DNA of 64,000 nt from Paramoeba atlantica (Eukaryota; Protista; Discosea): NCBI GenBank assembly GCA_977017575.1, contig CDRNVI010000012.1:372001-436000 (forward strand), read 5' to 3'. The position numbers and the translations under genes are program-made. This document shows positions 49,111-54,451 of this stretch, in pieces. The notes beneath the pieces were generated by a model. The model saw only the letters and a list, made by a program, of their open reading frames with translations, was not told the origin of the DNA and searched no databases. Every line of letters starts with the position of its first letter. Positions within the stretch are counted from its first letter, which is position 1.

Positions 49111-49596
49111 TCAAGTTTCAGCCTGTGAGAAAGGATTGTTCTCCGATCGATTAAATAAATTTTCTCTAAAATACTGACTCCTATCTTCGTGTTTCACTGC
49201 CTTGTAAATATCACGCAAGCTGCTAATTGCGTGAGCTACTAGTAGCTCTCGTTTGTTCCGTTTGATGTTGTTAAGGTGTGAAGGATTCATCTCCAAAACG
49301 TCCCCAGATAACAAGGGTCTTTTATTGATCGGTCGACGCGTTCGATCCTTTCTTCTCATTTTTTGAGATATTTCCACTTTAGTTTTCAGAGATAAATTCT
49401 CTAGCGTGGATCCGAACTGAAAACCTTCCTCAAGAGTTTTAACGTTGCTATCAATGTTTTCGGAAGATGGAATAACGTAGTTTTCACTATTCTCACTGTT
49501 GCCACGACCTTGTTTACTTCGTCCCCGCTTCGTAATTTGCGATCGCTTGAGCCTTTCCTCTCGTGATAACTTCGCTTTGCGAGTACTCTTAACCAT
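49111..49596 (-). CDS. Basic hypothetical protein
   Basis: 161 aa, K/R-rich. Confidence 0.6.
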   Translation of the reverse strand: MVKSTRKAKLSREERLKRSQITKRGRSKQGRGNSENSENYVIPSSENIDSNVKTLEEGFQFGSTLENLSLKTKVEISQKMRRKDRTRRPINKRPLLSGDVLEMNPSHLNNIKRNKRELLVAHAISSLRDIYKAVKHEDRSQYFRENLFNRSENNPFSQAET

Positions 49597-50033
49597 GTTT
49601 AAAAAAGATTCAGAAATTCTGAATCAGAATTCACGAAATAAATATTTAGTAGTTTTATAGATATTTAGTTTTATAAATATTTAGATATTTAGATATTTAT
49701 GATACTCCTTACTCCTAGTTGAATGAGAGGTCTACGCAGATGATAGATACAGTAACTCAAAAAAGTGTTCAAATGTTTCGACATTTTTTAATGTTTTTAT
49801 TTTTTACCAAAGAGAATCAGAGGATAATGCTGTAGTATATGGTAGTAGTGTAGGCTGGGGTAGTGCTTATATCCCCACGTACTTTGAGTTCATCAACGAT
49901 CTTACTACGAAAAACTATGAAAGATATAATGTCAGTCCAACATATGAACACTTTTTTGACTTTTTTTCGGACACGTTTTTTTATAGGAAAACGTTCTACT
50001 GCTTCACCCTTAATGGACCAAAATGGTTTAGAC

Positions 50034-50973
50034 TTAATACTTAGTAAGTCCCCCCTTCGCCCTGATGACTGCCCTCAAACGACGGGGCATGCTTTGGACA
50101 AGAGGGAGGCATGCACTTGGAGGAACTTTCGCCCATGCTTTTTGGGCCCGTTCCCATAACTCGATCATTCCTGCGGGTGGGTCGGGGTAATCTGCCGTTG
50201 CCTTTTTCAGTTCAACCCATAGGTTTTCTATGGGGTTTAAGTCGGGAGACTGAGGGGGCCAGTCAAGCACACACAGCTCCTGCGAATTTAAAAAATCCCG
50301 AGCCTTCTTACTCGTGTGCTTCGGATCGTTATCCTGTTGGAAGACGATCCGATCCTTCGTGACACTCAGCTTTTGTAGGGAAGGGGGCAAATTTTGTTGC
50401 AGTATTTGAACGTACTGCTCGGCGTTCATATTCCCGTGAACCAGCTCAATGGTTCCCACACCGTGCTCCATCATGCAACCCCATATCATGATGGAGCCGC
50501 CACCATACTTGAGCGTACCTTGTGTGTTTCGCTCAGACAGCTCCTCCCCAAAGTCTACCCAAACCCACCGGCTACCATTCGACTCGAAACGGCAGATCTT
50601 CGTTTCATCCGTGAAAAGTACACGGCCCCAGTCGGCGTGCGTCCAATGCTCGTACTTTCTTGCAAAAGCAAGACGTAGAGCCTTGTGACGTTTCGTAAGG
50701 TAGGGCTTCTTGACCCTCTTCTTTCCCTTCATACCACGCTTACGAAGGGAAACCCGAATGGTTTCCGGGCAAACATCCGCAATACCTTCGTCTCTCAACC
50801 TTTTGCTGGCGGCAACTGCGTCTTTTGTGGCGCCGCTAGTGATGAGACGGCGGAGGCGCCTACGGCAAGTATCACTCAGCTTACGTGGGCGACCGGTTGG
50901 TTGTCTAGATAGCGATGGAAGATATTTATTTTTAATGCGGCTGACATTTCCTACGCTTAAGTTTAAATCGGCG
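50034..50973 (-). pseudogene. 5'-truncated Tc1 transposase copy (left arm)
   Basis: Same translation as the right copy from AADLNLS onward; lacks the start codon. Confidence 0.9.
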
Positions 50974-51033
50974 TAGAATGTAGAAAATAGAGCAACTTGG
51001 TTTTATTCTCCTATTGTAGATCTTTGTTCTACT

Positions 51034-52062
51034 ATGCACAGTACACCGAGTTATTTACGAAAGATTGCTATTGAAAAACTTGAAAACGGATCTTCACTTC
51101 GTAGAGTGATTTAAACTTAAGCCGCCGATTTAAACTTAAGCGTAGGAAATGTCAGCCGCATTAAAAATAAATATCTTCCATCGCTATCTAGACAACCAAC
51201 CGGTCGCCCACGTAAGCTGAGTGATACTTGCCGTAGGCGCCTCCGCCGTCTCATCACTAGCGGCGCCACAAAAGACGCAGTTGCCGCCAGCAAAAGGTTG
51301 AGAGACGAAGGTATTGCGGATGTTTGCCCGGAAACCATTCGGGTTTCCCTTCGTAAGCGTGGTATGAAGGGAAAGAAGAGGGTCAAGAAGCCCTACCTTA
51401 CGAAACGTCACAAGGCTCTACGTCTTGCTTTTGCAAGAAAGTACGAGCATTGGACGCACGCCGACTGGGGCCGTGTACTTTTCACGGATGAAACGAAGAT
51501 CTGCCGTTTCGAGTCGAATGGTAGCCGGTGGGTTTGGGTAGACTTTGGGGAGGAGCTGTCTGAGCGAAACACACAAGGTACGCTCAAGTATGGTGGCGGC
51601 TCCATCATGATATGGGGTTGCATGATGGAGCACGGTGTGGGAACCATTGAGCTGGTTCACGGGAATATGAACGCCGAGCAGTACGTTCAAATACTGCAAC
51701 AAAATTTGCCCCCTTCCCTACAAAAGCTGAGTGTCACGAAGGATCGGATCGTCTTCCAACAGGATAACGATCCGAAGCACACGAGTAAGAAGGCTCGGGA
51801 TTTTTTAAATTCGCAGGAGCTGTGTGTGCTTGACTGGCCCCCTCAGTCTCCCGACTTAAACCCCATAGAAAACCTATGGGTTGAACTGAAAAAGGCAACG
51901 GCAGATTACCCCGACCCACCCGCAGGAATGATCGAGTTATGGGAACGGGCCCAAAAAGCATGGGCGAAAGTTCCTCCAAGTGCATGCCTCCCTCTTGTCC
52001 AAAGCATGCCCCGTCGTTTGAGGGCAGTCATCAGGGCGAAGGGGGGACTTACTAAGTATTAA
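51034..52062 (+). pseudogene. Tc1 DD34E transposase, full length but for a 12-bp insertion carrying two in-frame TAA
   Basis: ATG 51034 MHSTPSYLRKIAIEKLENGSSLRRV[I*T*]AADLNLS..GRPRKLS..FTDETK..QDNDPKH..SPDLNPIENLW..AKGGLTKY; 34 residues between D2 and E. Confidence 0.92.
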
Positions 52063-52501
52063 GTCTAAACCATTTTGGTCCATTAAGGGTGAAGCAGTAG
52101 AACGTTTTCCTATAAAAAAACGTGTCCGAAAAAAAGTCAAAAAAGTGTTCATATGTTGGACTGACATTATATCTTTCATAGTTTTTCGTAGTAAGATCGT
52201 TGATGAACTCAAAGTACGTGGGGATATAAGCACTACCCCAGCCTACACTACTACCATATACTACAGCATTATCCTCTGATTCTCTTTGGTAAAAAATAAA
52301 AACATTAAAAAATGTCGAAACATTTGAACACTTTTTTGAGTTACTGTATTCATCAGATGTACAATAGGCTATCAAATTAGAGACAACAAGCAATTTGTAC
52401 CTTTCATCTAACAGTCCACATCATATCTTGTAGAAGATGGATGATGACATGTGTATCAAACTAAAAGTTACGAAAAGTTCGTCCTTCAATCATCGAGTCT
52501 A

Positions 52502-54451
52502 TCAAGCAGATCGAGATCGAACAGTGTCCGACTTGAAGATAGAGCTTAATTGTTGGTTGCCATGAAAACCCATGCTTTCAGCATTTTCACGTACTTCTGA
52601 TAGGGGCGAAGCGGTGTATGTTTCATCTGCTGACGATTCACTTTCACTTTCAACAAGGTATTCTACAGCTTGTTTGAGCTGCCACGCTTTTGCCGAACTA
52701 AGATCCTCAACGTCGTTTTCAAGAAACGCTGCTATCTGCCCCGGAGTAACGTGAAATCGATCTCTACATTCTTGCAGCTTCTCCACTTTAAGGGTATTTG
52801 TGTCGGGTGATTGCGAAGTGAACGAGGTTGAAACAGATTCTGGGTCACCATTTTCTGTTGAGCCTGTGGAGTCATCAGAACATGAGCTGTTCCTGCTAAA
52901 TAAATATTGATCTCGGTGGCATGCTGATGTGTCGTCGTTTTCACAGACCTCTAGAAACCAATCAAAGGTTTTCAACATGTCCTCTGCTGATAACCGAGCG
53001 GAAGGATCTATTTCCAGCATAGGGCGCAAAAACTGAGATATTTCAATCGATTTTTCGGAAGTGAAATTATATTTTTCATATAACACATCCTCCAATGACC
53101 ATAACTTCAAGTCAACAACATGCCGAAAACCACCGTAGCTCGTCAAGAATCGGTCTCGATACTTCCCGTTGCCACGTGCCATATGATTAGGAATGGGTCC
53201 TAGGGCTTCTACCATCTGGGCTAAATGATCTTCATCGCGGCTGTACTGCTTGGATTCCTTTGGGTCAAACAAAAAATCTCCTGTTATGAGTTCAAAGGCA
53301 AGGCAAGCTGCACTCCACAGATCCGTTGAGGTATCATAGTCGTACCCTAGGATAACTTCAGGACTCCGATACTGCCGTGTCTGAATTTCATCACTGAACT
53401 TTTTATTCCTCCAACAAGCGTTTCCAAAGTCAGCCAAAGTAACCTGCTCCGTACGTCTCTGCTCCCAATCTGCGCTTACTTGAGTATCTCGTTTCTCATC
53501 CCTCTTTTCCGAGTCAACACAAGAGAGAGATTCCGTGGATCCATTCAGCCCGTTTGATGCGTACACAGGCGTAGAATGCTTCTCCGGTTTACTTTCCGGA
53601 ATTTTCAGTTGCTTTACTTGTTCTGCCAATTTGTCAGCTTCGTCACTTCCTTGCGAGGGTTCTGCTGGTTGCCCGGGCTTTTTGACGTCCTTTTCGCGTC
53701 TCTTCAGCCTCTTCTTTTGCGACTTTGTAAGTAATTCTGGATTCTTTTCTGAGAGTCTGATGTCTTGAGCACGATCAGGAGGTACATAGTTCTGCATGAC
53801 TTGCTGAATTTTCAAAGTTGGTGCGGAAAGCAGTACATTTTCGGGTTTGAGGTCCGTATGAATGATGCCTAATCTATGAATGTGCACCAGAGCCTGCAGA
53901 ATCTGCTTCATTATCTTTTTCACATGAGACAAAGGTAACCCACGATAGTTATGCTTCTCAATCAAATGCAAAATATTTTCTCCCAGAACTTCAAAAATCA
54001 TAATCACGTGCTTCCCGTTTGGGCCCCGATGCTCGAAGAAATCAAGCATGTGCGCACAATGTAAAGATTTCCATTCATCATGTGAGATACTATACCGTAT
54101 TTGCTTCAATACTTCAATTTCGTCCATAGCTGCTTCTGTGTATTGTGCAGCGCTCTTCTGCACTTTCATAGCCGCAAATAATTCTGTATTGTAGTCCCAC
54201 ACAAGCCACACGGTAGAGAAATATCCCCATCCTAATTTCTGAATTACGCGATACCGGTTCCAGTAGAGCTCACCTATGTGAACAGGATGATATCCCCCTT
54301 TTCGGTACTCTCGTTTCCGCTCCATTTCTGTATCGCTAAAATCTTCTTCGCTTTCACTAACATAATCATTTCTTTCTTTTTCCTTTTTTCTTCGGATCTG
54401 CATTTGTGGGTTCTGCGGCCCATTCTTTCGTCTTAAAAGTGCATGTCGCAT
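52502..54451 (-). CDS. SRPK: SR protein kinase
   Basis: YRKGGYHPV, KLGWGYFSTVWL, HTDLKPEN, spacer insert, ADFGNAC, IQTRQYRSPEV. Confidence 0.95.
   Translation of the reverse strand: MRHALLRRKNGPQNPQMQIRRKKEKERNDYVSESEEDFSDTEMERKREYRKGGYHPVHIGELYWNRYRVIQKLGWGYFSTVWLVWDYNTELFAAMKVQKSAAQYTEAAMDEIEVLKQIRYSISHDEWKSLHCAHMLDFFEHRGPNGKHVIMIFEVLGENILHLIEKHNYRGLPLSHVKKIMKQILQALVHIHRLGIIHTDLKPENVLLSAPTLKIQQVMQNYVPPDRAQDIRLSEKNPELLTKSQKKRLKRREKDVKKPGQPAEPSQGSDEADKLAEQVKQLKIPESKPEKHSTPVYASNGLNGSTESLSCVDSEKRDEKRDTQVSADWEQRRTEQVTLADFGNACWRNKKFSDEIQTRQYRSPEVILGYDYDTSTDLWSAACLAFELITGDFLFDPKESKQYSRDEDHLAQMVEALGPIPNHMARGNGKYRDRFLTSYGGFRHVVDLKLWSLEDVLYEKYNFTSEKSIEISQFLRPMLEIDPSARLSAEDMLKTFDWFLEVCENDDTSACHRDQYLFSRNSSCSDDSTGSTENGDPESVSTSFTSQSPDTNTLKVEKLQECRDRFHVTPGQIAAFLENDVEDLSSAKAWQLKQAVEYLVESESESSADETYTASPLSEVRENAESMGFHGNQQLSSIFKSDTVRSRSA

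Follow-up and report, generated by a model that had tools for sequence, protein, structure and literature searches.

The locus and its features

The DNA considered here is a stretch of 64,000 nucleotides from Paramoeba atlantica (GenBank assembly GCA_977017575.1, contig CDRNVI010000012.1, henceforth C12, positions 372,001–436,000 of the forward strand), which is called the window throughout, and at its positions 49750–52346 lies a transposable element of 2597 bp whose two arms are inverted copies of a transposase gene. The whole assembly comprises 45.7 Mb in 248 contigs, and each flank of the element was searched against it. Related loci were mapped against a half-element, U (U1–1373, window 50974–52346), in which the loop occupies U1–59, the stem begins at U60 and the ATG stands at U61; those of a second subfamily were mapped against a full palindrome, L020. 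The element and its borders are made up as follows, in coordinates of the window:

49748–49749, no strand: left copy of the TA target-site duplication (a single TA at the empty allele, C2:232276–232277)
49750–50973, minus strand: left arm, 1224 nt, with the inverted transposase gene from about codon 28, its 3′ end and the terminus
49750–49966, no strand: left terminal ~217 nt, the putative ancestral terminal inverted repeat (TIR) of the clade, with an outer 24-mer at 49754–49777 and an inverted inner 24-mer at 49939–49962
50034–50969, minus strand: left transposase frame, 311 codons, without start codon and N-terminal ~27 codons; mirror of 51127–52062, with Pfam DDE_3 and HTH_Tnp_Tc3_2
50974–50976, plus strand: 3-nt filler TAG at the left centre junction, recognised by comparison with the centre-keeping copies L002 and L005
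50977–51032, plus strand: 56 nt of the 59-nt central loop typical of the family, which is the right gene's 5′ leader, pyrimidine-rich on this strand and collinear with L002, L003 and L004 from U4
51034–51108, plus strand: codons 1–25 of the right gene, with its start codon (first helix-turn-helix region), with the N-terminus of the intact 338-aa open reading frame (ORF) of L002
51109–51120, plus strand: 12-nt insertion ATTTAAACTTAA, an exact copy of 51128–51139, placing two in-frame TAA stops in the right gene
51123–52346, plus strand: right arm, 1224 nt, defined by inverted-repeat search and arm comparison
51127–52062, plus strand: right transposase frame past the stops, 311 aa, with the catalytic D, D and E at D-34-E spacing (Pfam)
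52130–52346, no strand: right terminal ~217 nt (putative ancestral TIR) ending in ACTG, with the inner 24-mer at 52134–52157 and the outer at 52319–52342
52347–52348, no strand: right copy of the TA target-site duplication, from the empty-site comparison

An inverted-repeat search of the window returned one large inverted repeat (49741–50973 and 51123–52355; 1233 nt, with 149 nt between the arms), and direct comparison of 49750–50973 with 51123–52346 gave 0 mismatches in 1224 positions. The nine extra bases in the repeat call are host DNA in which the mirror matches at 7 of 9 positions; Tc1 target sites are usually partly palindromic. At the left the element reads TA followed by CAGTAACTC and at the right GAGTTACTG followed by TA, so that the TA-flanked, CAGT-terminated outline, the identical arms and the two intact termini that the first-pass annotation had described are all borne out. 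The terminal 28-mer occurs at these two sites only within the window, against 0 expected by chance.

Both arms encode the same open frame of 311 residues, in which Pfam recognises HTH_Tnp_Tc3_2 and DDE_3, in agreement with the earlier view that the arms are the transposase gene itself. That view had put the arms at the 3′ three-quarters of the gene, a figure that has to be raised: each holds about 92% of a gene of 338 codons (codon ~28 to the stop) together with the 3′ untranslated end. HTH_Tnp_Tc3_2 is found both in the arm ORF and in an intact 338-aa homologue. An intact homologue aligns with the catalytic domain of the Sleeping Beauty transposase SB100X (5cr4) at E = 1.8e-59, the motifs DETK, DNDPKH and NPIENLW being matched, and 34 residues separate the D of QQDND from the E of PIEN in the arm-frame sequence. 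With its TA duplication, DD34E triad, N-terminal helix-turn-helix and CAGT-ended TIRs, the element is placed in the Tc1/mariner superfamily and within it in the Tc1 (DD34E) family.

Filled and empty sites

A second contig, C2, matches the left flank up to position 232277 and the right flank from position 232276, the two matches overlapping by exactly TA; the site there reads ...GATGATAGA TA TTCATCAG..., both flanks being joined through a single TA. The flanks on C12 and C2 are 99.68% identical over 5.25 kb. The 2597 bp therefore represent one TA-duplicating insertion in one of two copies of the locus, and the earlier statements that the symmetry stops at the TA and that no segmental duplication is involved hold, the outer nine bases of the repeat call belonging to the host. 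Since many other contig pairs behave like haplotypes, the difference between C12 and C2 is read as a heterozygous insertion, the alternative being that C2 is a recent duplicate and not an allele. Filled and empty sites within one assembly are a direct proof of recent movement, and, taken with the near-identical relatives described below, they mark the insertion as young.

A family of palindromic elements

Among the best-scoring candidates (~45 loci in three subfamilies, the resulting copy counts being lower bounds), no copy with a conventional left end was found. Conventional single-gene copies, which the first-pass annotation had expected to be worth seeking, are missing from this set, and its proposal that the normal 5′ end had been replaced in this particular copy is not supported: wherever a copy in the set extends as far as the 5′ end, an inverted 5′ coding stem is present around the same loop. 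The fullest form is seen in L020 (C30:192368–195030), a palindrome of 2667 bp with arms 98.5% alike and a loop of 57 nt, from which two intact ORFs (339 and 356 aa) point outward. Judged by such copies, whose arms are ~1314 nt long, the canonical element in two subfamilies is a palindrome of ~2.67 kb with two divergent complete DD34E genes that start at the edges of a loop of 57–59 nt.

Around this form the copies fall away in two directions. Two-ended copies with internal deletions comprise the window copy, L014 (C93), L019/L044, L031 and L026 (C56), the last a centre-deleted palindrome of 2532 bp with arms 98.7% alike; all nine of the two-ended copies (9/9) are flanked by TA and end in CAGT. 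One-ended copies have one perfect end, a whole arm, the loop and a short inverted stem (27, 34, 40, 56, 69, 72, 107, 117 or 181 nt, or none), after which unrelated DNA follows. The two main subfamilies are ~79% identical at the DNA level and have the same architecture, with loops that align weakly; an architecture common to subfamilies this far apart indicates that the palindrome is old. Fold-back symmetry is thus the rule in the family, and the window copy is a centre-deleted variant of the standard build.

The loop occurs in both orientations among the copies. A loop inversion of the 'flip'/'flop' kind is unnecessary for this, as keeping either arm of a palindrome with an asymmetric loop yields both. 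Sister-site searches for L005 and L020 gave no partner or were swamped by other repeat families.

Some breakpoints recur between copies: those of L014 (1396/1409) and L031 (2234/2237) agree within 1–2 nt at U729/U730, at an AAATTT motif, and three copies (L019:2902, L044:2494, L023:1466) break at V104. Breakpoints shared by unrelated copies may be recurrent break sites inside the gene.

Scars at the centre of the window copy

Against copies that keep an intact centre (L002, L005), the window copy has two scars. On the left, the arm ends at U150, and 90 nt (the mirror of U60–149) together with the first three loop bases are replaced by TAG. On the right, 12 nt (ATTTAAACTTAA) are inserted between GTG and GCC; they copy a sequence 7 nt downstream, with one and two shared bases at the borders, and translation through them meets two stops, both TAA in frame. 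The insertion is absent in all other copies, which run GTGGCCGCCGAT, and the 21-mer across the left centre junction is unique in the genome. The scars mirror each other in position, at U150 in one arm and at U136–147 in the other, and a third breakpoint falls at the loop edge.

The left gene is without its start and ~27 codons, and in the right gene translation ends after codon 26, so that neither can make a full transposase; in the N-terminal, paired-type helix-turn-helix part of the protein, the gene's first ~27 codons are thus missing on the left and cut off by the stops on the right. In light of its intact ends, its empty sister site and its relatives, the window copy is very probably a young, non-autonomous, centre-damaged member of a palindromic twin-gene Tc1 family, present on C12 and absent from C2. 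The one-ended copy L002 on C16 carries an intact 338-aa gene with 3 differences in 1224 positions from the window arms, and with both of its own ends intact the window element could possibly be mobilised in trans by the transposase of such a copy, as the first-pass annotation had thought.

An element of this build moves as one cut-and-paste unit defined by its two identical outer ends, with duplication of the TA. A single episode of error-prone repair, in or close to the centre of the palindrome, may have left both scars; confidence in this is moderate to low, and two routes can be envisaged. By the first, gap-repair copying after excision would proceed from both ends, stop near the centre and be joined with filler; by the second, an extruded hairpin or cruciform would be cut at its base and then opened at the loop, and the ends joined by microhomology or with a templated insertion. 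The damage could have occurred here or before the element's arrival. Both routes are known for palindrome 'revision' and for transposon deletion derivatives, and the lineage is reported to rely on microhomology-mediated joining. Microhomology-mediated miniaturisation of Tc1/mariner elements is reported from mosquitoes (PMC3814204).

One-armed copies and possible breakage at the palindrome centre

The one-armed copies record heavier damage. That on C16 (L002:1501–2937; C16:182620–184056) has a whole arm, the loop, a stem of 72 nt, the intact gene and a perfect end at a TA, and on its stem side 1184 bp of host DNA present in the sister on C29 (L055:317–1500) are missing, with parts of two ORFs (L055:233–892 and 1112–1591); its junction holds a 7-nt filler that resembles nearby sequence. 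When the copy on C9 (L003:1946–3162) is set against its sister on C4 (L043), C4 proves to carry the one-armed copy too, but shorter by another 1217 bp, which comprise the element's right part and 304 bp of host DNA. The 5′-truncated copy L023, compared with five paralogous empty sites, lacks ~15 nt of host DNA at the truncated side. Symmetric two-way erosion from a break at the element end was considered as the origin of one-armed copies; the losses at C16 agree with it (1242 nt from the arm, 1184 nt from the host), those at L023 do not (~1418 nt from the element, ~15 nt from the host).

At least 8 of ~15 independent one-ended copies break 27–181 nt past the loop, which under even breakpoints has a probability of ~5e-7, a rough figure from a small sample in which alleles were collapsed by eye; stems past the loop are seen in L002, L003, L004, L005, L007, L024, L030, L035 and L040. 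This clustering suggests either that the palindrome centre is a hot-spot at which copying stops or breakage occurs, or that longer partial palindromes do not survive. In either case the centre is where elements of the family harm themselves and the DNA around them, the window copy being a mild, two-ended form of this, and the scars and one-armed copies form a natural series for the study of the breakage and repair of long palindromes.

Other repeats adjoin some of these copies. L007 (1340–1420, on C20) and L008 (C63) have a long microsatellite, (TATC)n, and after it TA and CAGTGGTGTTCAGCC, which resembles the end of another Tc1-like element; from there it is 75 nt to the one-armed copy's stem. 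L005:3613–3819 (C40:819195–819401) is an element of ~205 bp that matches itself on both strands, in the manner of a miniature inverted-repeat transposable element; it recurs at 95–97% identity at dozens of sites, among them a regular array on C21 (764729–782373) with a spacing of ~2 kb.

Genomic setting and a predicted hairpin RNA

The element lies midway in a 306-nt spacer between two minus-strand genes, with 153 nt on either side (49597–49749 and 52349–52501):

49111–49596, minus strand: downstream neighbour, an ORF of 161 aa without a Pfam match, its ATG 152 nt from the insertion point
52502–54451, minus strand: upstream neighbour, a protein kinase of 649 aa, its stop 153 nt from the insertion point

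The insertion leaves intact a pyrimidine-rich stretch that lies just upstream of the ATG of the downstream ORF. Outside the element the window holds 25 ORFs of at least 250 aa, all on the minus strand bar one that overlaps a minus-strand ORF, which agrees with the earlier placing of the element inside a minus-strand gene run. A spliced-leader 3′ motif of the kinetoplastid type, CAGTTTCTGTACTTTGTTG followed by GT, is found at three loci (L064, L065 and L066, at C14:91760, C23:255060 and C42:14576) and a control pattern at none; so few matches could reflect a spliced-leader gene array that the assembly has collapsed or lacks, or else a low copy number. From the motif and the gene arrangement the genome is typed as kinetoplastid-like. 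Known kinetoplastids transcribe their genes polycistronically, and if the array around the element is polycistronic too, a precursor RNA would contain both arms and is predicted to form a perfect hairpin of 1224 bp. In a computed fold, the inner 1098 nt of the minus-strand RNA form one uninterrupted stem (−1029 kcal/mol).

The first-pass annotation had linked such a hairpin to silencing, and thereby to Argonaute and Dicer-like genes. On the Argonaute side, the genome has a locally amplified PAZ+Piwi gene, with three copies within 25 kb on C29 (781160–806353) and two within 21 kb on C49 (216883–238621); C26/C42 hold a second Piwi gene with a weaker match. On the Dicer side, no match to the RNase III families PF00636 and PF14622 was obtained with Pfam profiles in the genome, a search that divergent Dicers could escape. 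Kinetoplastid Dicers are very divergent, which weakens this as an objection. Read-through of the array might thus give a 1.2-kb hairpin RNA whose small interfering RNAs (siRNAs) hold the family down, and this would apply to every palindromic copy and not to the window copy in particular. In favour of such silencing are the position of the element in the spacer of a long single-strand array, the spliced-leader motif, the perfect computed stem, the Argonaute-like genes and the precedent of Trypanosoma brucei, in which all seven of seven large inverted repeats (422 bp to 10 kb) give Argonaute-bound siRNAs (PMC3447711). Against it, apart from the RNase III result, stands the activity of the family, the polymorphic insertion and the near-identical copies implying that it moved recently and that any silencing is incomplete. 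The proposal is a possible one, the balance leaning slightly to the other side.

A broader conjecture, which at present is doubtful, would treat the palindrome as a working design for one-directional arrays, in which one gene is always in the sense direction whichever way the element lands, and read-through hairpins feed RNA interference and make the family self-limiting. The price would be a fragile centre, with repair copying or breakage failing near the loop to give centre-deleted copies and also one-armed ones, whose formation removes host DNA as well (1184 bp at C16).

Outside relatives and ancestry

An intact transposase of the family matches hundreds of metagenome contigs, mostly from soil, at 40–47% amino acid identity, and no match was found for it among viral contigs. 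Its nearest outside relatives (soil-metagenome contigs L067–L146) are single-gene elements of ~1.6 kb with homologous ends that begin CAGT after TA, and TIRs of 210–240 bp, in which outer and inner ~20-mers stand inverted to each other ~165 nt apart, the layout of the last 217 nt of the window arms. As these relatives are conventional, the ancestor must have been an ordinary Tc1 element, and the whole-gene inverted repeat arose in this lineage. The exchange of the 5′ end for an inverted copy, as put forward in the first-pass annotation, may then describe the ancient origin of the family and not an event in the window copy. One conventional relative (L095:1–3022; Ga0210403_10060951, soil) lies between inverted repeats of at least 938 bp, 99.7% identical, which run to the contig ends, so that a second long-TIR element probably encloses it.

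Alternative explanations

A false inverted duplication, produced by a fold-back chimeric long read, by collapse or by a polishing error, is very improbable. It would account for arms that are 100% identical where other copies differ by 0.25–3% and sister contigs by 0.3%, and the presence of family copies at contig ends (C30:3–1150, C31:16–974, C93) indicates that the repeat troubles the assembler. However, the flanks are unique on both sides and show a precise TA duplication against the empty sister site; the centre is asymmetric, its junction being unique and 12 nt of templated sequence inserted, features that chimeric reads do not yield; and the same architecture recurs at more than ten other loci, among them palindromes whose arms differ by 1.3–1.5% and copies common to sister contigs.

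Marginally less probable again is a one-off rearrangement in which a conventional Tc1 element lost its 5′ end here to an inverted copy of its own 3′ part. The conventional build of the nearest outside relatives, with TIRs of ~220 bp, does point to such a replacement once in the ancestry of the family, but the ~45 loci of the three subfamilies include no conventional copy, the inverted 5′ stem is present in every copy that reaches the 5′ end, and full palindromes with two intact genes occur in a subfamily merely 79% identical. The palindrome must accordingly long predate the window copy, which differs from it by deletion and not by gain. Two independent head-to-head insertions, one beside or inside the other in opposite orientation, have next to no probability even though Tc1 elements nest and this genome holds many copies, for there are no inner termini and no inner TA duplication, the arms meet at the gene's own 5′ leader with 0 differences between them, and the empty site records one insertion with one TA duplication.

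Several points weigh against the account preferred here, a centre-damaged copy of an old palindromic element. The repair mechanism is inferred from the scars only, and these are 130 nt apart with intact sequence between them, so that a single simple break would be insufficient without extra steps. The arm-spacer-arm structure of the window copy is known from the assembly alone, and consensus polishing could be partly responsible for the 100% identity of its arms. Instead of an allele, C2 could represent a recent duplication, and the genome-wide count, in which the best candidates were scored, is a lower bound.

Comparison with known systems

The window element and conventional Tc1 elements of the Sleeping Beauty type have in common the TA duplication, the CAGT terminus, ends of ~217 nt with two 20–24-mers, the helix-turn-helix and DDE domains and the D-34-E spacing. 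They differ in that a conventional Tc1 element of ~1.6 kb has one gene between its TIRs, whereas here the gene lies inside the repeat, in two divergent copies around a 149-nt spacer, and there is no distinct 5′ end. In the inverted repeat/direct repeat (IR/DR) group, each TIR carries two transposase-binding repeats in direct orientation. In the present element, as in its metagenome relatives, the inner repeat is inverted with respect to the outer (the putative binding 24-mers within each end), unlike the direct repeats of the Sleeping Beauty type (for the group, see PMC5224488).

Long TIRs as such have precedents, the named elements for comparison being Minos and Tec1/Tec2 of Euplotes crassus: Tc1 TIRs range from ~30 bp to a few hundred bp, with Tec as the extreme at ~700 bp, but Tec is a 5-kb multi-gene element with unique internal DNA and is not described as a near-complete palindrome of two transposase genes (PMC7325037). 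In a search of the literature for palindromic or twin-gene Tc1/mariner elements, no Tc1 with its entire transposase gene as inverted repeats was found. Merlin was the first DNA transposon described in kinetoplastids and is the only one reported there in the searchable literature (PMC8101967).

A parallel might also be struck with composite transposons. Tn5 and Tn10 consist of two inverted copies of an insertion sequence, and like the present element they hold two inverted transposase genes and are moved as a whole unit by their outer ends. Each of their insertion sequences, however, is two-ended and mobile alone, with cargo between them, whereas here there are no inner termini and no cargo, and the arms meet at the gene's 5′ leader around a loop of 57–59 nt. 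The fold-back geometry recalls Foldback of Drosophila, where tandem subrepeats make up the arms, which as a rule do not code for protein; the arms here are unique coding DNA, in which Tandem Repeats Finder (TRF) reports just trivial low-score repeats. The damaged centre, in turn, resembles the internal-deletion derivatives left by abortive gap repair, such as the miniaturised Tc1/mariner elements of mosquitoes (PMC3814204), which likewise keep two ends and have short microhomology or filler at the junction.

The inverted repeats of T. brucei are a possible functional counterpart: they too are near-perfect, 0.4–10 kb long, set in a kinetoplastid genome that is transcribed polycistronically and a possible source of hairpin RNA. 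Unlike the present element, known from sequence alone, they are not presented as transposons and have measured small RNAs (PMC3447711). A perfect 1.2-kb hairpin template lying in a polycistronic unit, in a genome with Argonaute genes, makes it a testable question whether read-through of a transposon can lead to its self-silencing.

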